DNA of 63,544 nt, the filler included, from Platydemus manokwari (taxonomy: Eukaryota), in assembly GCA_037951405.1 (NCBI GenBank). It is 4 parts of 4 records of this genome, joined end to end, with 100 filler letters (N's around TTAATTAATTAA, not from the genome) between each part and the next. Parts side by side here need not be neighbours in the genome. Positions count along the whole stretch, not along the records: positions 1 to 18,581 come from JBBMOY010344447.1; 3 more parts are not named here. One strand, given 5' to 3'. The position numbers were made by a program, and so were the translations under genes. How positions within the stretch are numbered: position 1 is the stretch's first letter; each line of letters opens with the position of its first letter. The notes under the pieces were generated by a model, which was given only the letters and a program-made list of their open reading frames with translations, searched no databases and had not been told where the DNA came from. This document shows, in pieces, positions 1 to 18,681 of this stretch.

Positions 1-74
<74 letters not shown>
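1..74. repeat. (TAT/ATT)n microsatellite
   Basis: About 24 perfect TAT units at the window start; the array may continue beyond the window edge. Confidence 0.95.
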
Positions 75-77
<3 letters not shown>

Positions 78-2662
78 GATTTTTAAAACAAATATTTTAA
101 TGCAATAATGATTGTATCTATTCAACAAAAGAGCTATTAAATTAACAAAACATTATAAATATTTGAGATATTCATCTCGGCTAGTTTATCTCGAGATCGA
201 TATAAAAATACATCGTAAAGATCTTTGAATCCCATGACTGAAAATCAAAAACATTACCTCTTTATTTGGCTTGTCGAACTGATTTATGATATCCAAGGAA
301 TAAATTAATTTCGATTTGTAGCGAAAACCTTGCGGAGGAATGTACAAAGTGTTTGTACCAAAGATTATGACACCTCTGTAACGATATTTTTTCTTAAGAA
401 CATTTAAATATTCTTTCAAAAGAATCTCACTTTATTCGAAGTTCGTTGCAGATTATCGATGATAAAATGAGACTGTTGTCGTCTATACTTTCTTCATTAA
501 TATAAAAAACCGATGCAGTCTGAATGGATTTTAGAAAAATATATTTTTTAATAACATCAATGAGGTATGGATAAATCCATCTCATCAAATAATCAAATCA
601 CACAAGTTGTTCTGCTATCCGATAATATCTATCAAAAATAATATCAAAAAGTGTCAATCAACTCCAGTCTTTATGTGATGACGTACGGAAAAATGCATTT
701 TTCATTATTTTTTATTTTAAACATCCAATTGGCAGTGTTGTGAAGGATCTTTTGAAAGATCTTTAAATAACACACTTAATTCGATAAAAAAATCAGATAA
801 TGGTGTAACAGTTAAAAAAAAATGATCATTTTTTTATCCGTATGGAGCTATTAAGCAAAATAATTACCAATGGCAACGAATGTTTGACAAAATTATTAGC
901 TTAAGTTAAGAAAAATAGTCTTTTGATCCAATTTTAATGTAATGAATTTTCGTGGGTTATTTAATATTAAAATTTATTGGTAATCATTATTTAATGAAAT
1001 TTTTGCTTAAAATTCAATTTTAGAATTAAAAGGGAAAATAACTAACAATCCTTATATATTATGTATAATGGTTTCACTAACATACAATTAAATCAAGTTA
1101 TTATTTTAAATATAAAATTTCTAATTAACAGTCTAAAAATATGAAGTAATTCTTTCGTACTATATCTCCCCAGTATTTCAAAATCTCAAAGACAATATCT
1201 TCAAGGTCCATTATTATATTTGGCCCTCCAAAGTAGACCTCATCAATTTCTACGACAATATTTCGGAATCCAATAATTGTTATATGCCAAGTTATTTATT
1301 TAAAACTTACAAACTTTGTACATTAATAAACAATTTTAAGTTCTTAGTTTTATTTTAATAAAAATTGTTAATATTCGTTCATTGTTGGTTTGTTTATGGA
1401 TGACATTTTGCTAATACACTTTGTGTGAGTCCCGTGCACAAAAAATACTTTATTCTGAATGTCGAAAAGTGATAAGGCCGAATTGTTCAACAAAGCTCAT
1501 ATTCGAATTCCGAAACTTCTTACATATTTATGGCATCCCCACCTGTACTATTTAATTGATTTGGATGAAATCTTCATTTCATTACAGTATGTACAGGTTT
1601 TGCATCTATGTATCCGATCTATTAAATAGATATTAATATACTTATTTTGATATAAAACACAAGTACCTAGTTCCTGGGACTCCTCAATGATTTCCAAGTC
1701 ACGTTTATATAAAATAACTCTAAAAATCTTAGATATCATTCCACTTGCTTCTAATTTGAAAAAAATGGCCACGCTAATTTTCAATTAATTGATTTTTAAA
1801 AGATTTTAAAACTCCTGAGTATATATTATTTGTTTCTAAACAACTAAAATTTTTCTCAAGTACTTAAATAAAAAAATCGAAATACTTTTAGAATTTAATT
1901 AAATAAACTATATAGATTTTTGCAACACACTTCACAAATTAAAAATTTTACTTTATGACCTTTCTTTTTAACTTAATCCGGAAATACAAAAGTTTCCTTC
2001 AATAAATAACAATCAAAGGCTCAAATAAAAAATTAAAATAAATACTTGTAAACTAAAAGCGTTATTAAATAAATTTTGCAATATCAACAACAAACGGTAA
2101 GTATTCAACAGACTCGTTAAAGGAAAATGATTTATTTAAGTTGATAGATGTGAGTTTGAGCCAATATCAGGTTACTACATTACTGTTTAAAATTATTATA
2201 AATACACAACATTATTAAGAGACATAAAAATTATTATTTTAACAAGTAATCTCAAATGAGTAATATTAAAAAAATTGAAGTTATTCACTTTCTTTAAAAG
2301 AAAATGCATTTTAGGAGAATCAGTGCTTACAATTACTTCTAGCGATCAGTTGATTAATTATTTGTGTAAAACTTAAACCGCTTCAAACCATTATGAAGTC
2401 GAGGTTATAAGTTCAAATAATAAAAATCAATCTATTTTTCGAATAAAAAGTTTGTTAAATTAATTCAACTTTTGTGTTTAAATTAAAATAAAATCTTCCA
2501 ATCATAAGTCACATTTGAGCAAAGTATTAATAAAAACATGCTAATGGTGGAAATATAATTTTTTATTTGCATCAAAAAATTTTAGTTGAATAAATAAAAC
2601 ATTGATGTTCATATAAAAATAGAAATCTTAAAGATTAATCAGCAATTTCATCATTAATATCA

Positions 2663-5600
2663 TCACCACCATCCGTCAGAGGTCCGATCAGATTCGTAAT
2701 CCATTTCATCTTGGTACTCATCGATTTTATAATCTGTGTTTTGAGTTTCGATATTTTTTGATTCTATTTGTTTCTGATATTCATCAAAAAAACCATGTTC
2801 ATCGTTCTCGATAATATCAAACAACAAATCACTATGATATTCAATATTGACGTACTCGATCTTTTGAAAGCTTTTATCCGGTAGTTTGTTTTCCTCAGAT
2901 TCTTTCATTGAAGACAATTTTTCATCCATTTTTGGATCACAATTTCGTTGATAAGAATCAAAGAAATCACTGCTATCATCTTCGAAATCGCCATAGTTAT
3001 CCTGATCACTTTCAATTGAAAAATTTTGCTTAATAGTCTGTCGTCTTGATTGTGGAGGACATTTTAAATCATTGTCCAATTTCATTAATTTCAGATCAAA
3101 TAACCATGGTGGAGATATTTGATTTGACTGTATCAATATTTTCCTAAGTTCATAAGAATGCTTCCAATCACCTTCATTCATAAAGGTGATTGATTTTCCA
3201 GTCTTGCTAGAAAAATTATTTATAACTACAATGTTTGACACAATTAAAAATTATTATAAGAAAATCAGGATAGATAATAATTTTTCCACAAGTATACAGA
3301 AAAATCAAAAATGTTTTGAAAAATCCAAACTATCAAACTTATTTCCTTTTCATATTCTATATTTGAAACAGTTTTATTCCAGAATGAAGATAATTACATT
3401 AGATGGCTTCATTTAATATAGACATAGGTTTTTTTATTATTACTTATTCGATAATTAATAAATCAAATCGTTATAGTTAACCAAAGTTTTAAAAACGATT
3501 GATCTGAAGTGATTTCATATAACTTCCAATAAAGATTCTGATATATTTTGAAAAACTTTCCGTTCGGTTGGAAAATCACTATATATTTTTTATTTCCCAC
3601 GGGATTGTTGCTCATTCAAAATATAATACAAGTGGATTTTTTAAACGCTATGCAAAAAATGACATATTTGTCGTAGATAACAATGAATATTGAGTATTTT
3701 ATACATTTTATATGATAACTATATATTTTATACCCCGTAGCAATGCTAATATATTGTGTAATTTAAGAGATTTTTCATTTAAGTCGACACTATACATTCA
3801 TATGAATTCGAGTTTTGATAATATCGACAAATTAAACAAATGATTTTCAACAAAAATAAAATATTTGAAAATTAAAGCATCTAGCTTACCCAGCGCGTCC
3901 TGTGCGACCTACTCTATGTACATATTCTTCAATATCTCTAGGAAAATCATAATTGACAACGCATGTGATATCAGCAATATCTAGACCCCTTGAAGCAACG
4001 TTAGTTGCTATTAAAACTGTACATTTGCCATCCTTAAACCATGATAATGACTGCTCACGATCCTCCTGGCTAAGGTCGCCATGTATATCACATATTTCAG
4101 CATAATGACCTAGTTTACCTGATCTCACCAATCGATCTAGGTAGTTTGTTAAAGATCGACACTGAACTTTGCGTGTTACAAACACAATAATTTTATCCTT
4201 TTCATTCATACAACGTAATATTTCACATAATTCATCGGTTTTATCAGAATTATTGACGAATTTTACCTCTTGGACAACGTCATTGCAAGCCTAGAGAAAA
4301 ATATTAACACAGTGGAAGTAACCTTTAATAAACTTTAAAAATGTAAATGTAAAAACTTTAAAAAATAACACCAGTAGTTGGAAATTGATACCAAGTAATT
4401 TATATTAATTATAATCTATTTATACTTATATATAAAACATTGTGTGCCACTAGAAACACACAAATATAGAAAATACAAGTAATACACGCTCAGAACTATC
4501 AAGGTCTAACATGGTCATTTTCAAGGACATTATAAATTCAACCAAAAAGAATATTAACACATTGACGGACAGTAGGAACAAATGAAGTTCGAAATTTAAC
4601 ATTATATATTTTTGTAATTTTTAGAATATTAGAAGTATTAATTAAGCACCTTTAATTAGGTTGCTGCCATAACCGTCATGGCGTCAGCGAATTCTAGACA
4701 CTAAGTATTGGGACGGTGGCGGCTGTAACTTCGCTTTGACGGTTATAGACGCAAGTGTCCGTCAACGTGCTAATTTCATTATTTAACAGGTTTATAATAT
4801 GCATTTGAATTGCTTTCAAATTGATTATGAAATGCTCATTTTAGGAACAATTACAATTTATTATACTCACGAATTTTTTCTAAGAACTCGTTTTGGTCAT
4901 TGAGGATTTAAAAATGATGATTATTTCTAAAAGATTTTATATATTTTGTTAACTATATTAATTTGTTTAAATAATTGTAGTGAAATCTAATTCAGTGTTG
5001 TGACTTTCCAGAAAATTTCCCATGCGTGATTTATCAAATAGTAGCGACTTAGCCATTATTTTTGATATGTTTCAATTAGTTTTATAAACAGTTTCATTCT
5101 ATTTTAAGAAAGCATTAAGCATGTATTTGTCACTTAAGTCATCAAATTATCTAAAACATATCAAATTACGATTTTACACAATTGAAGTACATGTTCACTT
5201 TCAAAAATCATGATTTTGGTTTTACATAGTAAACTATTCGCAAGCAATTTCCTCTTCAACCTTACATTCATACCATTTGAAGGAAGCAGACATTTTTCAG
5301 AAGCAATATTATTTTGTCGTATCAACTCATACTGGTTTATGCTACGGACATATATTCTATATTATAAATAGAATTTTAATAGGTATTATGAAAAAATATT
5401 TAAGTGAAAAACTAGCAAGGGTATTAGGTAAATCTAATGACAAAATTCTTCACGAGTGTATTCATAACAGTTAAAATATATCTACACATACAATGCAACA
5501 ACATTCTTATTAAGCACTATAAACGTTAAAAAATCTTTATTGTACACAAAATATTGAAAAAATTTATTCAATTTTTTTTATTCAAATTAAAAGCTCCAGT

Positions 5601-8600
5601 AGAGACTATCACTTTGCACAGCCCATTGTATGCAGGACTTTAAATGAAGATTTATTAAAACCACTGCATTAGAAGTTTAATGTTATTCTAAAAAGTAATT
5701 TCAGTATGTGAGTAACTGGAAAGGCAGAATAGGATTTAAAAAATGGGTAATATTATTAATTTTGAGGTCACAAGAAAGCAGGATATTTCTCCTTCAACAG
5801 ACGGAAAAAATGCAAGCAATTTTGCAGATATTTACTTTGTATTATTACATGTGCACTTGTAACTTCGTATGGTTAAGATTTAAGTAGAAATTGAGAAAAT
5901 TTATTGTATTAAAGTCGGTATTATTGTCCTGACTGTAACGTGGGTTTGTTTGATTTAAGATTTATCACACAAAGTTGAATTTTTATTTTTTTATAAAATT
6001 GACGTTTTTCAATTTTTTGTTTTAAGTTTTCTACTTTATCAATATTGTGAATAAAAACAAAAACCCTACTTTTTTGGACCTCATTTCACAGAAAAACCCT
6101 CGCATTTCGTGGTTAAAGAACTTAATATGTAAATTTTCCGAATCTTTTGATGTTTTATGTTAATATTTGTTTATATTTTATAAATCAAATATAAATGAAT
6201 AAATCTCCTATCGTTGTGGAATTTGTTGAAATCAGACTATAATTGGCTCAAAATTACGTCGATTTATTATATCAGAAAATAATAATTTAAAACTCACTAT
6301 TAGGTCCAAAGAACCGACATTAACTTGGACCGGATTATCCATATATAACAAAGCTATTTGCTGAACAGAGTCGGGCCAAGTGGCACTTGTCATTATGGAT
6401 TGTCTCTGTTTCCTTGTCTCTTTAATAATACTAACTACTTGTGGCTCAAAACCCATATCTAACATCCTATCAGCTTCATCGAGCACCAGATAGCTGACCT
6501 TTGAATCAAATAATTTTACTAACATGAAATCACTTAATTACGTCTTTCAAGCACAAACATCCCATTCTTATCAGATCGTTTATTCGACCTGGTGTTCCAA
6601 CTACAATTTCAGGATTATTCATTCGTAAGTCTTTAATTTGCTTGTCTTTCTCTGCACCACCATAACAACAGACTGATTTAATTTGATCATATTGAATCTT
6701 ATCCATTTCACTTTCAATTTGCATCGCTAATTCCCTCGTCGGACTGAGGATAAGTGCAGTAGGCCCTCTCCGGTATACCCTTTGTCTGTGGTAAAAATGA
6801 TTTTCCAATGTTAATAGATCCCCATTATTGAATTATTTTTAATTAATGAGAACAAATGCAGCTCTATTTATTATATACATGTGGGTATTTGTTAATTAAC
6901 TTCGGTAAAACGTAACTTTGAGAATTCTGGGAATTTACTCGTTCACTATTGATAAAATTTTGTTTATAAATATATCAATAAATATTTGCAGTATTTTTGC
7001 CATTTAATATAATACTATCTTTTCGAGTAATCGCTAGTAGCGAAAAAATCATTAAGATCATTACAATCATTAATAAAATTGTGATTTGATACACCAACTT
7101 ATTAACCAATTTATCACAATTAATAGAAATGTCTCAATAAATGCCCATTAGACGATTTAAAGATGCAATAAAATAATTTTAAAGTTTATCAGAAACAACG
7201 CAAATATACACTTCATACCTTCGTTGTATTATTTAAATAAGTTTTATTTAAATATATTCGTTTTTTCGAGGGAGAAATTAGTGCTAGTAATTATATACAA
7301 TTAATTAAATAACAAATTAAATTTAAATAGATTTTTTTATTTTTTATTTTTCTAAAAATGTATTTTATGTAAATTAATTTATCGCCCGTCGATTAATATC
7401 AATTCAAAAGTACTATTGACAAAAATAATGGGGCCTATATATGAATGAATTGCTATAGTTTTGAAATGATAGCATAAAGCAGAAAAAATAGCAATCATTA
7501 AAATCAATATAATAATATTGATCGAATATTATAATTTTATCATCTTCAAAGAAATTATCACTTTCAAAACTATTAAAATTACAATTCATTTTGTATCAAT
7601 AGTTAAATCTCTTTAATTCATAAAATTTAAATATCCCTTCCTACAGATAAAGAAGATGCTTTAAATAAGACAGGTAGTAAATAACAAATTTTGGATCTAA
7701 TAAATGATTTATGAAAGGATTTAACACAAATTACCGATAACACTGGTCAATCAAATATTATAAAAAATTAATATCGTAATTAAAACACTCCGAATAATTT
7801 TTCAAATAGCTCATATTTACTGCATTTACATCACTATCATAGTGTTAAAATATAAATAAATTATAAAAAAATTTAATATTTGATTAATGCGTGATTGAAA
7901 TTGATCTTAGCTATATAGTAGAAAATAAAGCGGTATTTTAAACCTGCTATTTATAAATGTATATGCATAAGATTTGATTTCTATTTCGATAACAATAAAA
8001 TTCGTGAAGATGCAATTCAACGAACTTTGAATGTTACTACAAACCAAAACTATCGACTCATTTTTATCGAAGTTATTTTTATAACATGATAGCAATCGAT
8101 AAAACCATACAATTAATCCTATCATTAACCATCATTAAAATATAATGCAAATATTTACAAACGTTTAATAAGAATCTTACATCACCACAATACTAAATAA
8201 CATTTTGAGATTCAAAGTTAATATAGCAAAAATAGAAAATTTTGATTCATTATAAAATGAAGTTTAATTTATGTTTTGTGGTACCAAGTGCAACACCACT
8301 TGGTAGATGGACTAAAATTTGGGAATATCTTATCAATATACACTTGACCGTGATTCCAACCATTCATATAAAATAAAAACGTAGATTTAATAAATAAATC
8401 TTTCCATGAAAATTCGATGATTTACTAACATTTTATTATCAGTACTTAAATCAATGAATGTCTAAAATATAGAATTACAAGGAAATTGATTTTTCATTAC
8501 TTAAAATTTTAAGTTTTTAAGAATCAAATATGGCTTCTTAGTTTTTAATCATTCTGATAATACGTATTTAGTGTCAAAACACGAGTTTAAGATTAGTAAC

Positions 8601-10384
8601 AGAAGAGAATCACATTGGTAGCTGTAGTATCTTGTCACAAACTTATGTACTAACCACACCATAGGTCCTTCGTGACCTTAGAACACTTTAAACTAAAAAG
8701 ATTTTATGAATATCAAACTTAAACGCTAAGTTACGCTTTGATAGGCGATGAAAGCAGGATTTTTATAAGAACACAGTACCTTTAGAATTTATCTAAAGGT
8801 TTAAAGCATGGACCATTTACCCCCAATCCGAGATTAAATAATCAACATAGACACAATTACAAACTGAGTATGGACACTAACTCTTGTAACTTTGTATCAC
8901 ACATGCCGATAGCAAAATTAAAAGAATTCGTGGGAGAAAACATATTGTGCTTTGCACATACAACATCACCTTAATATCTCAATATCAATAACAAATTATA
9001 TAAGCTTTAATATAAAATAATTTGTATAACTAATGTCACCACAGTTCATACTATATTAACAAATTTCGGAAAGACTATTTTTTTATTTTTAATAAAAAAT
9101 ATTTCAAATAATTCTATCAGGAATTTTAATAAAAAATTTAGTCAAAATATTAATTAGTTTAAATTTACAATTGTTACATTTCACTTGTTAAATGAAAAAA
9201 ATCACTAAAAGCACGTGATCTATTATTTTCCTTCCACGTGAGTTTTTTCTATTACTCTACAATTTATTTTCAAAAATAAAGCAATACATTATAAAATAAA
9301 ACGAAATTCACTTCACAATGCATTTAATAATAACCATTTATATTAAATTGCTTTTTAATTCGAATCATCTTTCAATTTTAAAGATAATTTTGATGTTATA
9401 TTTTTATTGATTAAAATGTGTACTGAAATTTTTATTACATATATTCTTTATTAAGGCCACATTAAGATAAAATGACCAGTGATTCCATATGTTGAATATT
9501 ATCATAAATGTTTAATTAAAATTCAATTGAAAGATAATTTATGTTATAAATATATGTGAAGAAATCCTGATTTTATTGCAATACAAGTTTTAATAAAATA
9601 AATATTAAAAATTATAAATATTTTAGATATCTCGAAAACATATTCTTGCAAAATCTTACTTTATCTGACCATTGATGTGAATTAAAGCTGGTAAGATAAA
9701 TGTCAATGTTTTCCCGGTTCCAGTTTGAGCTATCCCAATGAAATCTCGACCACTGAGAATCACTGGCCAACCAATACATTGAATAGGTGAGGGTTCCTCA
9801 AATTTCAATAATTTGATGATATCAAGAATATCTGGATACTTCCAAAACATTTCTTCAAAATTTCTAATTGGCTTTACGATCCCGGAAGCTCCGGGTAGTA
9901 CTTCGACTTGGTCCTCGTTATAATCATTATCATCGTGTACACTTTCGAATCGATCGATTGGACAAGTTTGCAATTCTTTAGCTATTATATTATTTTTGAG
10001 CAATAGAAAAGACTCAATTTCTTGTAGAGACAATGCTGAAATGGATGCATGCTCTTCATAAAAATTACGACGAATTGGATAGACATCTAAAACATTAAAT
10101 AACTCTCAGACACATTTTTCAAAATTCTCACTTAAATCTTTATCTCCCAGAATATATGGTGTTCTAGGTATTGGATTAATAGATTCCTTTTTAGGTGTCT
10201 CAATTTTTTTTGGAGATTCGGTGATTACTTTTACTACACTAACTTCTTTTTCTTCGCTTCTATCTACTTTATTCCAGTTGCCCCAATAGTCGTCATCACT
10301 CATGTCATCTTGTAGATAACATCTACCAACGACCTTATTTATGTTTAATGATAAATTAGACATTGGAACAGAATTATTTTCCAT
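2663..10384 (-). CDS. DDX43: DDX43-like DEAD-box RNA helicase paralog lacking the KH domain (gene B), about 689 aa, acidic C-terminal tail ending SDGWW
   Basis: Hand-built exons 10384-10132, 10086-9660, 6785-6542, 6498-6298, 4290-3890, 3206-2663. All introns are GT-AG (45, 2874, 43, 2007, 683 nt), phases are consistent, and the total is 2070 nt with no internal stop. Motifs: Q ([13 protein letters not shown]), I (AQTGTGKT), Ia (PTRELA), Ib (TPGR), II (DEAD), III (SAT-WP), IV (IVFV), V (TNVASRGLD), VI ([10 protein letters not shown]). The true 5' end is uncertain. Confidence 0.88.
4554..4773. mobile_element. piggyBac-like MITE in an intron of gene B
   Basis: TTAA-CACATTGACGGAC at 4554-4570 and GTCCGTCAACGTG-CTAA at 4757-4773 (15/17 inverted match, TTAA-type target site). 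Internal inverted repeat CCATAACCGTCA (~4667) / TGACGGTTATAG (~4737). Confidence 0.65.
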
Positions 10385-10438
10385 TTCTTGCACACTGAAT
10401 AAAGATTCATGTTCTAAACCCCTTCAACAAAAAAAGTA

Positions 10439-10651
10439 CAACAGAGTACGGATAACTGAAATCCCTCACAACGTATATAAAGTGGTGTTGATATGTGCAC
10501 TCAGAATTATAATGAGCGTGATTTGTAAAATGTTTACAATATAAGCAACTTAGAAAATCAAAAAAATTATTGTCTATACTTATGTGGAGCATATAAAAAT
10601 GGATAACTCGAACAACGTTCAGTAATATTTCGAGTTATCCTTACTCTACTG
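10439..10651. mobile_element. pogo/Tigger-like MITE between DDX43 gene A and gene B
   Basis: Imperfect terminal inverted repeats TA|CAACAGAGTACGGATAACTGAAAT (left) and CAGTAGAGTAAGGATAACTCGAAAT (right, reverse complement). An extra internal GGATAACTCGAA copy at 10601-10612 forms a hairpin with 10629-10640. Family assignment rests on TIR resemblance only. Confidence 0.5.
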
Positions 10652-10779
10652 TTAAACATCAAACGCAATCAACCAAAAAACAGAATAATCAATAAACTTT
10701 AATTTAATATTAAATGCAATAAATGCAGCCAGAAACTAATATTCAACAATACACAAATGTTTTACATATCTATCGTATT

Positions 10780-13736
10780 TTACCACCAATCATCATTATC
10801 CGGTGCCTCAGATAGTTTAGGCTTATTAAAGTACCTGGAATCGGTTTGAACATCGTCTGTTTCATCAGATCTATGTTTTCGACTGAAATTATTTGACCCA
10901 TCTCTTCTTCCGCCTCCACCATATCCACCTCCATCGCGATCACCACCATAACCTCCAAAATTTCTACCTCGTCCACCTCTTCCTCTTCCACCACCACCTC
11001 TTGAACCATAACTTATACGATATTCTTGATGTTGTTTCATTAATTGTGGTAGAAAATCTGGTACATCTTGGTCTCCATCTTCGAGAATTCTGATCAATTC
11101 GGCAGCATTATTCCAATCATTTTTGTTCATGAATGTGAATGCTTCTCCTGATCGCCTAAAAATGTGATATTGAAACGTGATATATAATAATATTTAATTA
11201 TTTTATATAATTTAAAAAGCAAATAATATATTTTTTAAATTTTAACGAAGCTTAATGATCTGTCATCACAATAAAATCACAGCCTGCAAATGAGAATCAC
11301 TGTTTTATTGATTTCAGAAAAAATAATAAAATGAAAGAATATTAAAATTTCATTTCAATCAATAAATATAAAAATAATAAATTAATACCAACCCAGCTCT
11401 ACCAGTTCGACCAACTCGATGAACGTATTCTTCAATATTTTTAGGAAAATCGTAATTGATAACTTTTGTTAAATCTGCAATATCTAGACCCCGAGATGCT
11501 ACATCGGTTGCAATCATCACATTACGAGCACCGGATCTCATCAATTTTAATGCCATTTCTCTCTCTTGCTGATCAAGATCGCCGTGTATTTCACAGGCTC
11601 TAACTGCACCTTTTGGACCGAGCAAACCTTTAGAACGTTTCAAATATAACTCAAAAGCTAAATCACTGCATTGTGCTTTTCTAGCAACAAATATGATGAT
11701 TTTATCGTCTGGTTTGATTTCAGATAATATTTCAATGAGTCTCTGAGTTTTATCATGATATTCGACATATTCAACATATTGCCGAACAGTGTGACAAGCG
11801 TTTAGATCGAGTGTTCCCACATTAACTTGAATAGGATCTTTCATATGCGTAAGAGCGATTCTTTGAACACCGAATGGCCATGTAGCACTCGTCATTACTG
11901 TTTGTCTTTGCCTTCTAACAGCATATATTAAATTGACAACTTGAATCTCAAAACCCATATCAAGCATTCGATCTGCTTCATCCAAGACCAAATAACTGAC
12001 ATCTTTCAAATTGAGAACACCCGAATCTTTTAAATCTTGAATACGACCAGGAGTTCCAACAACAATTTCTGGATTTTCTTTCAACTGATAGATCTGATCA
12101 CGTTTGTCAGCTCCGCCGTAACAAACAACAGAATCAATATCGTGATATGCGTATTTCTGAACCTCGTTCTGGATTTGGATCGCCAGTTCTCGAGTGGGAC
12201 TTAATATGAGAACGGTTGGACCTTGTCGTTTTTCCCTTGGCCTACAAATAAGAAATAATTTATTTAGATTCATATAAAATAATATTTGACAAAATTTTTA
12301 AAGAAAATTTAATTTAATAGAAAATTTTTTTAATTTAATAAAAGTTAAATAAAACTCTACTTTGGCTGCCCTTCTATATGTATAAATGCTGGTAGTAGAA
12401 ATGCAAGTGTTTTTCCAGTTCCAGTTTGGGCAATGCCAATGAAATCACGACCTGACATTAAAACTGGCCAACCTATACACTGAATAGGAGATGGTTCTTC
12501 AAATTTTTGTTTTCTAATTTCTTTCAATATATCGGGACGATTAAAGAAAGCCTCCTCAAACGTTCTCACAGGTTTCGGAATAATTTTAGATATTGGAATC
12601 TCCTCAATTAACTCCTCGGGATCTTTTTCGAAAACCGTATTGCCAAAATTACAAAACGATGCTCCACTTTCAGATTCGATTTCCTTAATGATAATATTGT
12701 TCTTTTCTAGTAGAAATTTATCCTTCTCTTCATTCGTCATTCTCGACACATTTGGATGTTCGTGGTAAAAATTTCGATGAACTGGGTAGAAATTGCTATC
12801 TCTGTTACTTTTTAATCTCATTTGTACATTATTTGGACGTTTCCTCACGGGCTTTTCTTCTTCCATATAAGTTGGAATACCCCAATCGTCATCTGGTACA
12901 TAACTATCAACTTTTGGTTCATTGAATTTTGAACTAATGTTTAATGGCTCATCTTTAAATATCAATGAATCTATAGAAGGTGTTTCGTCTACCTTTTTGC
13001 CCCACCCACCCCAATCGTCTCCATTGACTTCTTGAACGTTATTAGAATAATTATTAGATCGAGAGCTAAATGATCCATTTGAATAACCGTAATCACCACT
13101 TCTTGAATTATAATTGTTATTATTCTTAAAGTTTGAATTATTGTCTCTGTAACTGTTGTTATTATCCCTATTAGAGTAATTATCATTTGATGTGCTATTA
13201 AAACTTCTATTATATTTCTGATATTTATCTTTATCGTTGTTAGAATCACCCCAAGAATCATTTGAAGACTTCCTTTTCCAAGAAGAACCTCTATCGTCCT
13301 GATCATCCATGTCAAATGTATTTCTGGACTGACGTTTATTTGAATAGCTATTAGATGAATAAACTCTATCATCTTTGTCTCCATAACGATTATCACTACT
13401 ATCATTTAAATGACGTTTTTGTTGCCGTCTTGTAATTTCATCTATTTTGGCTCTGGCTTTATCAATATTTTTCGAAGTACCTTCTAAAAATATTGGAACA
13501 TTATCATCAACAACTTGATCTTTCTTGATCTAAATACAAAAATAGTAAATTTTTTAAACATTCCGCCATTGTTTACATTAATGCGACAATTGCTTTCTTC
13601 AGAAATTTCTTTAATGCGAGAACCGCCTTTGCCAATAATTAAACCTAAATGCTTTGACGGCACATATATTGTTGTTTTTTCTAAAAATTATTTGTTAATT
13701 AACATAATCCCAACGTGAACACATACCATCATTCAT
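10780..13736 (-). CDS. DDX43: DDX43/DDX53-family KH-domain + DEAD-box RNA helicase (gene A), about 835 aa, with N/S/D/R-rich linker and C-terminal RGG region ending NDDWW
   Basis: Exons 13736-13727, 13680-13577, 13529-12361, 12241-11393, 11155-10780. Introns are GT-AG (46, 47, 119, 237 nt) and the total is 2508 nt in frame. The N-terminus [39 protein letters not shown]...KARAKIDEI is a type-I KH domain with a GxxG loop (missed by the ORF track). All DEAD-box motifs are present, including AQTGTGKT and SATWP. The KH+DEAD architecture is characteristic of DDX43/DDX53. Confidence 0.93.
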
Positions 13737-13793
13737 TGAAAATAAATTTAATAAATTGTCTAAAAGTGACTTTTTAAACAAACATCATCACAA

Positions 13794-13802
13794 AGCCATT
13801 TT
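13794..13802 (-). promoter_or_regulatory. AAAATGGCT YY1/Pho-like motif and short uORF start (MAL*) upstream of gene A
   Basis: The motif ends 58 nt before the ATG; the same motif sits at the same distance in gene C (17011-17019). Confidence 0.35.
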
Positions 13803-16800
13803 ATAAATTACATAATTTTATGAAATTAACGAAATTTGAAAATAAGGAAATCGCACACGGAGATCATCTTAAGTATCACAATTAATAATTAAAGCATTTT
13901 ATTTATTTTTAAAGTTCAGTTTATTTAACTTTTAAATGATAAATAATAATTATATACCATTATTTGAATATTTATTTAATATTAAAAAAATTTTAAATAG
14001 TATAATCATTAAATAAAATAGTTATTGCAAATATTCGGGAATACGGAGCATATATTTCTAAAGATAATTTTCTTACTAATTATGTTGTCTTTTTCATATT
14101 ATTGTTGTTGTCAAGCAGTTTCGAAAAAATGAACATGTAAAATTAATTATTGGGATACAATAATTCCAATAGCTACCTTTATCAGTAGGAACAATACCCC
14201 CTCAACCTATAGTAATAACATAAATTTCATCAGTAAGAAGTTTGTCTGATTTTTTAGCAAATATTTTAGAAAAAGTCTTCAAAAAATTGTCACTTAGTTC
14301 CATGTTAATATCAATAGTAAAGTTTTCTTGATTTGACTTCTGACTGATTAGTTATTTTTGTATGTCTTATTTTTCTTCAAAGATGTCACTTCTTTCTTTT
14401 CTTCAAAAATTGTGCCATATTATTTTTGCGTTGACCATTACAGTACTCTGTATTTATTTTGATCTATGTTAACTACTGTTCTACTTATTAAGAAAACTAG
14501 TTATATATTCATATAATTTTGAGTATCAGCATAATTTTATAAATTATAAAAAATAGTCATCACCATCTCTAAAGATATTAATTTTCATATTATTTTTATT
14601 CTATTATTATTGTTGGAGTTCCGGGAAAATGACATTTTTGTATTAACAGTTTTTGCATGATTTGATTCAATGCATTTTAGTAGGAAACTTTTATTATTTT
14701 TATTCTTCATTATGCAATCCTAATTCTTTTCTTTAATAATATAAGTTGTAACAGAAATCCAAATTACCCTTAATTGAAAAATATTTTAATATTCTTGCTC
14801 GATAATAATAAATAATAATTATTATTATTATTAGTGTAGAATCATGAATTAGTTTAGAATTTAGGATTTAATAATAAATTTATTTTTACCATAGTTAAAA
14901 TTATAAATGGTTCTAATGTATGATAATATTTTAAGTTAATTTTGATAAAACTTTAAGTTAATTTTTGGTGAAAATAAATTAATGAGAATAGAAATAAATT
15001 TAATAAAACTTATTATTGCGTAGCGACCAAAAATATTAATTATAAAAAGCCTATATTTTCTCGAATTCACCCGCACTTTAAAATAATCTTTAACAATAAA
15101 ACTCGAAAGGCAAAAAATGTCAAAATAAGCAACGCACTACATGAGAGATATCAGAAAACCAAATGAAGGTTTTAGAAAGGTCAATTGTTATTATGCCAAT
15201 GCAACGATTAAACATAATGTTGGTATAAATAACAAAATACTTTGTAAATGATTTATTAGTCACAATAATACAACTTTACCTCCAAAAACAGAATAACACA
15301 AATTCTAACATAAACATAACACTGGCAGCTAACATACTAGTAATTGACCATCTCGATCTCATTATTTATGCTTGCGTTTTGTGTGTTTCGCTTTTAATTG
15401 ATTGTTTTGTTTATTGTATTTTCGTTGGATCCGACGACCATAATATGTGAGGATTAGTCAATCCCTATGCGTGTCTCCTCGTGTGACTATGTCTCTCGTA
15501 AAAAAGAGATAATTGAAAAACATTATTATTACATATTATTATTACGACAATTATTATTAAAATCACAACAAGCTGAAGTAAAACGAAACTTTTAAAAAAT
15601 CAAATCAATAAATTTAAAGGTTTAAATATCAATTAAATATAAAAGTTTAGTTCAAAAAATTTGGTCATTAATTCAACAAGCTTTTGAATTGGACGAATTT
15701 GGAATCGAATTGATTGTTTACAAGGTTAGGATTGTGTTGGATATTTGGCAGCAGTTTGAGTTTAGTATTGTTAGAAACAGATTGATGAGATTTTTTATGT
15801 TAAATTTTGGAGAGATGCTTGAAATTGAGTTTGACTCAGATTGATGAGATTTGGGTTTTAGTTGGGCTAACTTCAACAATTTAGACTTTGTGAATACTTA
15901 TCTTTGAGTATGACGATTTTGATTCTGATATTTATGAGTTTGATTTTGATAATCATTTTACAAATAAATAATTGTATAAATTGATGTTATACAAAATGAT
16001 TATAAAATATATATTATTATATATAAGTTAAAAATTATTATTCAATAAATTCCAAGAAAAGAATTGATAGAATAAAAAACATCAAAGAAAGAAAATTAGT
16101 GAATTTTAATCAATTTATAATTTTAAATGTCAAAAATTTTATTAAAATTATGTTGAAAAGTACAGAAAATGCTAAATTTTTCTCAATGATTGCAAATACA
16201 AAGTTTCTAAAGTCAAAGACCATATAAGTTGAAGTGAAACGATTACAGGTCACTAATATGAAAACATGGAAATTTTCATAATTTGATTTTAAACGAATTT
16301 CTAAGTTAGGACTAGAAAAAGTGATCAATATAATTTTCCGGAGTTTAAAGATAATGAAAGAAAATAATAATAATTTATATATATTTGTTAAAACACATTT
16401 TTAATCAATTAAAGTATAACCCGTCTAATTATTTAAAGGCCCTCTGAGGCCTAATTATCATATTTATTCACATTATTCTACCTTGTCATGTCTTACACCT
16501 ACAACTATGAAAATAGATAACGATTACTCTGGTTTCAAACAGTATGAAAAGATTACTCAGATTTAATTAGGTTTTTCAGAATCCTATTAACAAAAGGAGA
16601 AACATAAATAAAGTCACAACAAAATTTCCATTACATAACATATTCATGATTATCATAATATTTATTCGCAAATTAGTATCTTCGATACAATAAGTCAAAA
16701 ATTACATAATTTAATAAACTTGACAAGTTTACTTGATATTTATAAATAATGATCCAATTTTTTAATGCGTCACATTCTTGGTTTTATTTCCATATTTAGA

Positions 16801-17010
16801 ACATATAACTATTATATGTAACTCATTTTAACCATAAAGTTGCTTAATTCAACCACAAACGATTTAAATTATCAGTTATTTTTAAATAAGTTTTGTTAAA
16901 CTTTGAACAATGTCTCATATTTCTAAGAACAATAGTAGTCTTTTATTATCATTATTTATTTCGATTTTATTGTAAAAGCTTTTACAACCTAATTAAGAAA
17001 TCTGAAAATA

Positions 17011-17019
17011 AAAATGGCT
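17011..17019 (+). promoter_or_regulatory. AAAATGGCT YY1/Pho-like motif and short uORF start (MAMSLDLF*) upstream of gene C
   Basis: Positionally conserved with gene A, ending 58 nt before the ATG. Confidence 0.35.
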
Positions 17020-17076
17020 ATGAGTTTAGATTTGTTTTAATTAATTTTGCTTTGGGAATTTACAAAACTATCATTA

Positions 17077-17665
17077 ATGAATGACGGTATTTATTATGAT
17101 TTGTCTTTAATTATTTTATTAACGGAAACTTATAAACTTTAGAAAAATCTACAATCTATGTGTCAACAAGACACTTAGGACTAATTATTGGGAAAGGTGG
17201 ATCCAGAATTAGAGAAATTTCGGATGAATGCAACTGTCGAATTAATGCAAGATAAAATGGCGGCATTTTCTAATAAATTTTCTTTGGATCTTTTAGATAA
17301 AGAAAGATCAAGCCGTTGACGATGAAGTTCCAGTGCTCTTGGAAGGATCACCAAGAAATATTGATAAAGCCAGATCAAAAATTGATGACATTACACGGCG
17401 TCAGTACAAGCGTCGCGATAGTGATGACAATGATCGACAATACAGTTCAAATTACAATAACTCAAATAAACGGTCATCTCGTCGTAACTATGACGATGAC
17501 GATAATGACAAAGACGATAGGGGTTCCTCAAGGAAGAGGAAGTCACCGAATGGGCGTCAAAATGAACGAGATAGATCTCGCCGATCGACTAGAGATAACG
17601 ATGATCATTATACCGGAAATTCTCGTAATTCACGATCTTATAATGATCGCAGCAGAAAAGAATAA
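17077..17665 (+). CDS. KH-domain-only paralog of DDX43 (gene C), about 160 aa, with R/S/D-rich tail
   Basis: Exons 17077-17086, 17143-17246, 17297-17665 (483 nt). Intron 1 is GT-AG (56 nt) and intron 2 is GC-AG (50 nt), both at the same positions and phases as in gene A. Protein: [78 protein letters not shown]...DDRGSSRKRKSPNG...RSRKE*. AATAAA overlaps the stop and occurs again near 17718. Confidence 0.78.
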
Positions 17666-18581
17666 AATTGAAAAATGAATGTTACTATTTAATATATTTG
17701 AATGGTTTCAGTTTTGAAATAAAGTAATTGCAAGTTAACTTCAGTCATTTTGAATTAATGTGAGTTGGTTGATGATGGACAAACAAAGAAGTCATACAAA
17801 TTGGTCACTAAAAAGGAATTGTTAGCCAACACACGGTAAATGTTTATTTCAGGGAAACAATGTATCATCTGATTAATTGTTACTTTTGCACAAATTGACT
17901 TCTGTGATGAATTATTTTTTATTTAAAAAATATTTTTGTGTTTTTTAAAAATTTATTATTATCATGTTTCAATTTAGTATATAAAGTTTACTCTTGGAAC
18001 ATAAAAAGCGATGCAATTTGTTTCTACTTAAATCGCATATCAATTATTATATAAATTTATTTGCTGTATTTTTCCGATATTACTTGATTTGTAAACTCGA
18101 TAAATTTTAATTGAAAATATTCAGAACATTGGATTTTCGATTAGTTTTCTGAGCTGCGTTAATGTTTACAGATAAATGGCATGAAATCGTCGATCTAATG
18201 TTCATTAGAGATGGAAAATGCATCAATTTAATTATAAATATTAATGTATAGAAAGTTGTAATTATTTTTAATTTAATTGTAAAAGTGAAATTCATGATAT
18301 TGAAATAATTGAGTATATGATTAGAAAACAAATAAGTTTAATTTAAATCGATTGAGATTAAAATTCAATTTAAATATTAATAAATTTCAAATGATGAAGA
18401 CTGGTATAAAATTTGATAAAACTTGAAATTTACAGTAAATATTATTTACAGCATTTAATTGAAAAATGTTATGAAGTAATTTTTTATTGAGTAATTTGGC
18501 AAAGACATTTAAATTATGTTTTTTTGAATGTTTTAAATTTTGAAGTGAAATTAAGTTGATGAAAAATAGCATTGTTATTTG

Positions 18582-18681
18582 NNNNNNNNNNNNNNNNNNN
18601 NNNNNNNNNNNNNNNNNNNNNNNNNTTAATTAATTAANNNNNNNNNNNNNNNNNNNNNNNNNNNNNNNNNNNNNNNNNNNN
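18582..18681. other. Assembly gap with artificial six-frame-stop linker (N44-TTAATTAATTAA-N44)
   Basis: The identical 100-nt structure also occurs at 31757-31856 and 44710-44809. Confidence 0.9.

Follow-up and report, generated by a model that had tools for sequence, protein, structure and literature searches.

Helicase-only and KH-only paralogues beside an intact DDX43-type gene in Platydemus manokwari: a candidate case of gene fission by inversion

To our knowledge, DDX43 is the sole DEAD-box helicase that carries a KH domain. Human DDX53 is a full-length paralogue and is not split. In published work, the DDX43 KH domain was found to bind nucleic acid that is single-stranded and pyrimidine-rich, and unwinding depends crucially on it (PMC7949032); deletion of this domain from Bombyx DDX43 abolishes ATP hydrolysis while binding to Ago3 is kept, the stimulation by the KH domain being independent of its RNA binding (PMC8025031). 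The title of a reference cited in PMC7949032 states that full binding requires all domains to be physically connected. Here we analyse a locus of Platydemus manokwari (assembly GCA_037951405.1) at which an intact DDX43-type gene (A) stands between a helicase-only paralogue (B) and a KH-only paralogue (C). Given this published requirement, it is of interest to find a natural, conserved copy that lacks the KH domain, yet the same requirement offers no argument for easy complementation in trans. The window, that is the whole stretch of 63,544 nucleotides (nt) that was analysed, joins four parts of four records, and the locus lies in its first piece (positions 1-18581, from JBBMOY010344447.1), which is gap-free with a GC content of ~27%, the sole run of N (18582-18625) lying beyond its end.

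The main observation is that B and C cover adjacent, non-overlapping parts of A, C from residue 1 to ~172 and B from ~176 (recognisably from 208) to the end, and that both reading frames appear to have been retained under purifying selection. A fission by inversion, which we judge somewhat probable, is our best model of their origin.

An intact gene and two complementary partial paralogues

Gene A (10780..13736, minus strand) is an intact DDX43-type gene of five exons (13736-13727, 13680-13577, 13529-12361, 12241-11393 and 11155-10780) that encodes 835 amino acids (aa). Its product runs from a KH domain through an N/S-rich linker with WG motifs and a complete DEAD-box core to an RGG tail ending in WW, and only here does the full motif set (Q, I, Ia, Ib, II, III, V and VI) stand in one polypeptide with a KH domain. 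The half-KH encoded by exon 2 reaches 46 bits with Pfam KH_1, for which the cut-off is 21.5 bits, the GXXG loop reads GKGG at residue 20, the DEAD and Helicase_C domains are detected, and the linker is a low-complexity segment of 215 residues. The joins of exons 1, 2 and 3 agree with P0002, the spliced A-type N-terminus of a relative. The best named homologues are arthropod DDX43 proteins (aphids, beetles, bees, ticks), and A is an ordinary member of the DDX43 family.

Gene B (2663..10384, minus strand) is a helicase-only DDX43 paralogue of 689 aa, encoded by six coding exons (10384-10132, 10086-9660, 6785-6542, 6498-6298, 4290-3890 and 3206-2663) whose borders are all GT-AG. Motifs Q, I, Ia, Ib, II (DEAD), III (SAT), V and VI are intact. 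A search of B for a KH domain found no GXXG loop, no KH match and no KH exon that could be joined in frame. B also lacks the RGG tail and carries instead an acidic tail (net charge -20), ending in WW; the whole protein has a net charge of -35 and an isoelectric point (pI) of 4.8. Orthologues of B were found in two other assemblies (L003 and L002). Against them the nonsynonymous divergence (dN) is 0.26-0.31, the synonymous divergence (dS) is saturated and dN/dS is well below 1; on this measure B is under purifying selection, and it has evolved several times faster than A.

Three introns of B (10131-10087, 6541-6499 and 6297-4291) have no counterpart in A, and the first of them is also missing from the relative's A. 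These introns were either lost from A ahead of the speciation or acquired by B. An origin of B as a retrocopy was rejected, as B has more introns than A, and a supposed frameshift at 6540-6500 was likewise discarded, since it is a 43-nt GT-AG intron.

Gene C (17077..17665, plus strand) stands head-to-head with A across 3.3 kb. Its three exons (17077-17086, 17143-17246 and 17297-17665) show the same intron positions and phases as the first three exons of A and encode 160 aa (pI 9.6), namely a KH domain followed by an 85-residue basic tail, with a net charge of +8. The half-KH of exon 2 scores 39 bits against Pfam KH_1, and the GKGG loop is intact at residue 20. The tail is homologous to the linker of A up to A residue ~169, and residues 1-119 of C exon 3 match residues 39-164 of P0002. 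At the DNA level, similarity between A and C spans both small introns and continues, weakly, for ~80 nt ahead of the two start codons (69.5% over 82 nt; E 0.014), from which it follows that C was copied along with promoter-proximal sequence. Intron 2 of C has a GC donor (GCAAGA) and is a GC-AG intron. A motif, AATGGCGG, recurs 6-8 nt past the intron-2 donor in A (13570-13576), in C (17253-17262) and in the A orthologue of a relative, L001 (about 106-113), a conservation that is unusual for an intron of 47-50 nt.

How constrained is C? Over the KH domain, omega (dN/dS) between A and C is ~0.09, with dS saturated. The KH dN is 0.126 between A and C, 0.099 between A and L001 and 0.115 between C and L001 (dS >1.4), and the dN branch of C is about as long as that of A. 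The KH of C has thus evolved no faster than that of a genuine helicase gene. Furthermore, all gaps in the A-C alignments are whole-codon. In neutral simulations at the local base composition (n=400 per branch length; four lengths, the shortest being 0.2 substitutions per site), no copy retained both the ATG and an open frame at any length, the shortest included. Judged by these values, C shows strong purifying selection.

The relation of the two partial genes to A lies in their boundaries. C ends at A-equivalent residue ~172. The first motif shared by A and B starts at residue 208 in A and at residue 30 in B, and B exon 1 starts 32 codons before it, which places the beginning of B at A-equivalent ~176 on the assumption that the linker is colinear. 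Indels are common in the linker, so that the abutment of B and C is uncertain by roughly ten residues. A sequence-only reading had proposed these three DDX43 genes on a gap-free stretch, with B holding all helicase motifs without a KH domain and matching A first at residue 208, and with B and C as complementary parts of A; the gene models and domains place all three genes where it had put them, and each of these proposals holds. It had also aligned C with A residues ~1-127, and here the match of DDRGSSRKRKS in C (residues 111-121) to A 116-126 stands while the end point does not, as the homology extends to A ~169.

Age and origin of the partial genes

In a tree of the region common to all available sequences, A and L001 are sister to the B clade (B, L003 and L002), and the A+B group stands apart from the DDX43 of other animals with a support of 100/99, a value given for the B clade as well. 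As A and B are sister clades, the duplication behind B is lineage-specific, and B is, on this tree, a paralogue particular to this lineage that three or more species have retained. One and the same sequencing run yielded L001 and the B orthologue L003, so that this relative has both A and B. In L003 the last exon of A is followed by a ~0.5 kb spacer, B1 and B2, an order identical to the one found here, and the A-B junction with a truncated B therefore predates the speciation.

C appears to be old as well. A, its counterpart in the relative, P0002 and C were compared as a quartet at 146 columns free of gaps. The informative sites divide 13:3:1, and the majority pairs the two A sequences with each other and joins C to P0002. 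C is therefore not derived from A after the speciation but is older, and a recent copying of C from A was rejected on these counts. In the KH tree, the KH domains of A and C group together and with P0002. The frame of C has been kept open while synonymous sites reached saturation.

Since pairwise dS is saturated, a comparison of dS between A-B and A-C is unable to date the two splits, and stem-to-tip branch ratios were used. Age was taken as (stem + tip)/tip on the A lineage, a measure on which the rates of B and C have no influence, with the split of P. manokwari from the relative as the unit. The split of C is dated to 2.85 (bootstrap 1.9-4.4), and that of B to 3.3 (1.0-7.1) on the A lineage and 3.9 (2.6-5.6) on the B lineage. 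These estimates would be compatible with one duplication, with wide intervals.

Under the fission model, a DDX43-type gene would have been duplicated into a head-to-head pair in the ancestor of P. manokwari and at least two relatives. A single inversion would then have had one breakpoint just beyond the 3' end of A and the other inside the linker-coding part of the long exon 3 of the second copy. The inverted segment would thus have comprised A and the 5' part of the second copy, which would have been cut in two. The part of this copy with the promoter, the first two exons and the beginning of exon 3 would have become C, still divergent from A, and the rest would have become B, on the same strand as A and 395 nt behind its stop codon. 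The observed order (C reversed, A, B) would result from one inversion of a head-to-head pair. From a tandem starting state, one inversion cannot yield it.

Two independent partial duplications of A could also leave such genes: a tandem copy from within the linker would have given B, and an inverted copy of the promoter and first 170 codons would have given C. If, on this view, only copies ending between domains survive, both boundaries would be expected in the linker, whose 215 residues tolerate breaks, and the B branch, which is far longer than the C branch, and the width of the age intervals are in keeping with separate events. However, the end points of the two events would have to coincide within about 4-15 residues, the gene order would have to match the product of a single inversion by chance, and the age estimates overlap. 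We regard such a double origin as unlikely, though as deserving real weight.

Several further points weigh against the fission model, or against C as a working gene. Faster evolution of B, but not of C, could fit different origins. In the tree of the KH domain alone (73 columns), the branching order of C, A and the relative's A is not resolved. The A-C junction is supported by this one assembly alone, and the piece ends ~900 nt past the stop codon of C, so that further downstream exons beyond it are possible. The position of the first ATG of B is not conserved, and here as in L003 and L002 the frame stays open as far upstream as the acceptor, which makes the true 5' end of B uncertain. C depends on its GC-AG intron, as retention of intron 2 would bring a translation stop after ~41 residues. 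A search for C-like small proteins (67-213 aa) found none, an exhaustive search of representative sequences with C exon 3 returned only P0002 and one spurious match and hence no C orthologue, a search of the ESM Atlas gave no usable match for C, and a scan of JGI metagenome contigs with the KH-tail alignment confirmed nothing. These searches rely on open reading frame (ORF) calls and C exon 3 is devoid of an ATG, and the missing orthologue is therefore weak evidence. Finally, a search of sequencing runs found the sequence in one DNA run and in no RNA run.

Part of this evidence could be read to mean that C does not work at all, and is a recently dead relic or an ORF preserved by chance, untranscribed or unspliced, with A and B as the only functional genes. 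The GC donor of intron 2, the lack of a homologous small protein in the databases searched and the lack of an RNA run all fit such a reading. Against it stand the omega of ~0.09 with saturated dS, the origin of C before a speciation across which synonymous sites are saturated, a frame never kept in the neutral simulations, the whole-codon gaps and the intact GXXG loop. At the GC donor, moreover, stands a +5 G that is missing from the A donor, and its GCAAG context, which is typical of used GC-AG introns, would favour splicing there. A non-working C thus appears improbable to us.

The earlier proposal of a duplication followed by fission and inversion fits three independent observations, the abutting boundaries, the order expected from a single inversion and the indistinguishable ages, which are compatible with one origin within wide intervals. 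The separate phylogenies that had been suggested made A and B sisters in the tree of the shared region (100/99) but did not place C in the KH tree. Likewise, synteny in relatives bore out the position of B behind A in L003 and yielded the B orthologue L002, but produced no orthologue of C, in weak searches.

The 5' end of B and the intergenic regions

The A-B intergenic region (10385..10779, minus strand) is 395 nt long from the A stop codon to B. Its first ~100 nt, a block of the A 3' untranslated region (UTR) (10779-10680; L003 617 to about 720; minus strand), are ~90% identical with the relative, against only ~73% for the coding sequence, in which dS is saturated; by this comparison the block is strongly constrained non-coding sequence. 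Next comes a hairpin-like feature (10640-10601; L003 about 822-870), a 12-bp perfect inverted repeat GGATAACTCGAA...TTCGAGTTATCC whose stem is kept in the relative while the loop varies in sequence and length. A third copy of AGTTATCC is found at 10450-10457, within the conserved element just upstream of B. The inverted repeat could form a hairpin, or could be a set of repeated protein-binding sites.

The conserved element itself, ATTTCAGTTATCCGTRCTCTGTT (about 10460-10440), is followed by an intron-like segment of 45 nt (10439-10395) that ends in TTATTCAG just before the B frame. This segment (45-48 nt, CTCTGTT followed by GT...TTATTCAG) is conserved in the same three species. Together, the element and the segment (10395-10460; L003 1058-1120; L002 1-57) could represent an initiator-like start site, a micro-exon of 16 nt or an intron in the 5'UTR. 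The alignment also extends to residues that precede the relatives' first ATG (SVP, Y-MQD).

Could B owe its expression, or even a KH domain, to A? A KH-encoding exon spliced onto B, a case named beforehand as one that would undo the split, is ruled out by frame: A exon 2 ends in phase 0 and B1 needs phase 2, so that no splicing of the KH exons to B1 keeps the frame, and a KH-B fusion isoform was rejected for this incompatibility. The joins to B1 that are in frame involve A exon 1 by way of the 16-nt candidate micro-exon, or A exons 3 or 4. Joining exon 3 or 4 to B1 would duplicate core motifs, exon 3 adding a second Q motif and motif I.

It could still be that B is not an independent gene but is expressed from the transcription unit of A, either by read-through in an operon-like manner with trans-splicing at the conserved TTATTCAG acceptor, or by alternative splicing from A exon 1 through the 16-nt micro-exon to B1, or with further coding exons at its 5' end. 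The short spacer (395 nt) and the shared strand would suit such an arrangement, as would the acceptor-like TTATTCAG and the 45-nt intron-like segment conserved in three species, the open frame upstream of non-conserved ATGs, and the in-frame join of A exon 1, the candidate micro-exon and B1. However, no KH domain would be gained in this way, as exon 2 is out of frame with B1 and exon 3 brings a second Q motif and motif I, and the conserved intergenic motifs are equally explicable as a promoter of B's own. We give little credence to a dependent B.

The other intergenic region, the A-C spacer (13737..17076; no strand assigned), places 3.3 kb between the divergent genes A and C and has no Rfam match or long ORF. 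In this AT-rich sequence a short stretch of higher GC content is seen at 15300-15500, also devoid of an ORF or Rfam match. The introns of the locus are either tiny (43-47 nt) or 2-3 kb in size. The three DDX43-related genes are all the recognisable content of the piece by Rfam, long-ORF and domain scans: no Rfam family was matched in 1-18581, and no long ORF with a domain was found there besides A, B and C. By tblastn, the piece holds two KH copies, those of A and C, and no helicase-like exon within it downstream of C.

Possible roles and comparison with known systems

From its intact motifs, B is predicted to be an active-looking DEAD-box ATPase. As it has lost the KH domain and the RGG tail and has gained an acidic tail, B probably depends on a partner for RNA engagement, and is most likely a partner-dependent ATPase or clamp in the pathway of A. 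C is most likely a small basic single-KH RNA-binding protein, by prediction, and its duplication together with promoter-proximal sequence of A would make co-expression with A probable. It is thus most likely that B and C diverged into separate roles within the RNA pathway of A. Their opposite charges (-35 and +8) would be compatible with a possible direct association. That B and C make up a two-piece DDX43, in which C would attach to B without a covalent bond and either turn on the ATPase of B or load B onto RNA, seems doubtful to us. If true, KH-dependent activation would be a regulated trans step beside the one-piece A, and the pathway might be a germline or small-RNA one. That B and C cooperate in trans or swap partners, that C acts as a decoy, or that the proteins sit in germline or stem-cell granules, is speculation.

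Two features of A and B touch on these roles. The first conserved element between A and B is a WG/GW-type motif (A 208-216, DDWGGWG; B 30-38), which takes the forms YWGNWN, NWGSWN and NWGTWN in the group of B orthologues. We take this motif to resemble Argonaute-hook motifs, as a lead only. The second is the C-terminal WW of A (10783-10788) and B (2666-2671); most of the arthropod DDX43 proteins inspected (among P0004-P0115) end in a single W, Y or F after an RGG-rich tail, and an aromatic residue at the C-terminus would seem, as far as these sequences go, to be conserved in the family.

Over a long time this lineage has retained, next to one another, the intact enzyme, one without a KH domain and a KH protein standing by itself, and the locus allows one to ask whether a KH domain acts in trans and what role a DDX43 core has without it. 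Under the fission model it would furthermore offer a clear case, open to dating, of a gene split by one inversion. Read from sequence, the split DDX43 is best regarded as a well-supported genomic observation and not as a demonstrated mechanism. A limited search of the literature found no description of a DDX43-derived KH-only gene beside its parent gene.

With respect to subfamilies that have no KH domain, B resembles DDX5/DDX17/Dbp2. The closest solved structures to the core are Dbp2 (8ark, E 1e-74) and DDX17 (6uv0, E 2e-68), the RecA1 domain of DDX53 (3iuy) being also matched in the structure search. The tree places B with A instead, and not with other helicases, and B has therefore lost its KH domain secondarily. 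Proteins that lack a KH domain but carry the annotation DDX43 are known from the fireflies Photinus (P0056) and Abscondita (P0104) and in the click beetle Ignelater (P0057), in which the core starts shortly before NFY-EHP. These elateroid proteins may reflect an independent loss of the KH domain, or truncated gene models. Their existence means that the helicase-only form alone is not unprecedented; they differ from B in belonging to another lineage and in having no known companion KH-only gene.

The nearest counterparts of the two partial proteins have been made in the laboratory. B is like the KH-deletion mutant of Bombyx DDX43, but is natural and evolutionarily retained, and it differs from engineered KH deletions in that its RGG tail has been swapped for an acidic one. 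C is like the recombinant KH fragments of PMC7949032, but is natural, separately encoded and retained. As for the family itself, A shares the N-terminal type-I KH domain and the DEAD-box core of DDX43 (HAGE), DDX53 (CAGE) and the insect DDX43 of the piRNA ping-pong cycle, and, like arthropod DDX43, it has an RGG tail that ends in an aromatic residue. B and C descend from the same family, and each fails one defining feature of its architecture, B being without the KH domain and C without the helicase; they are therefore derivatives of the DDX43 family rather than members of it by architecture.

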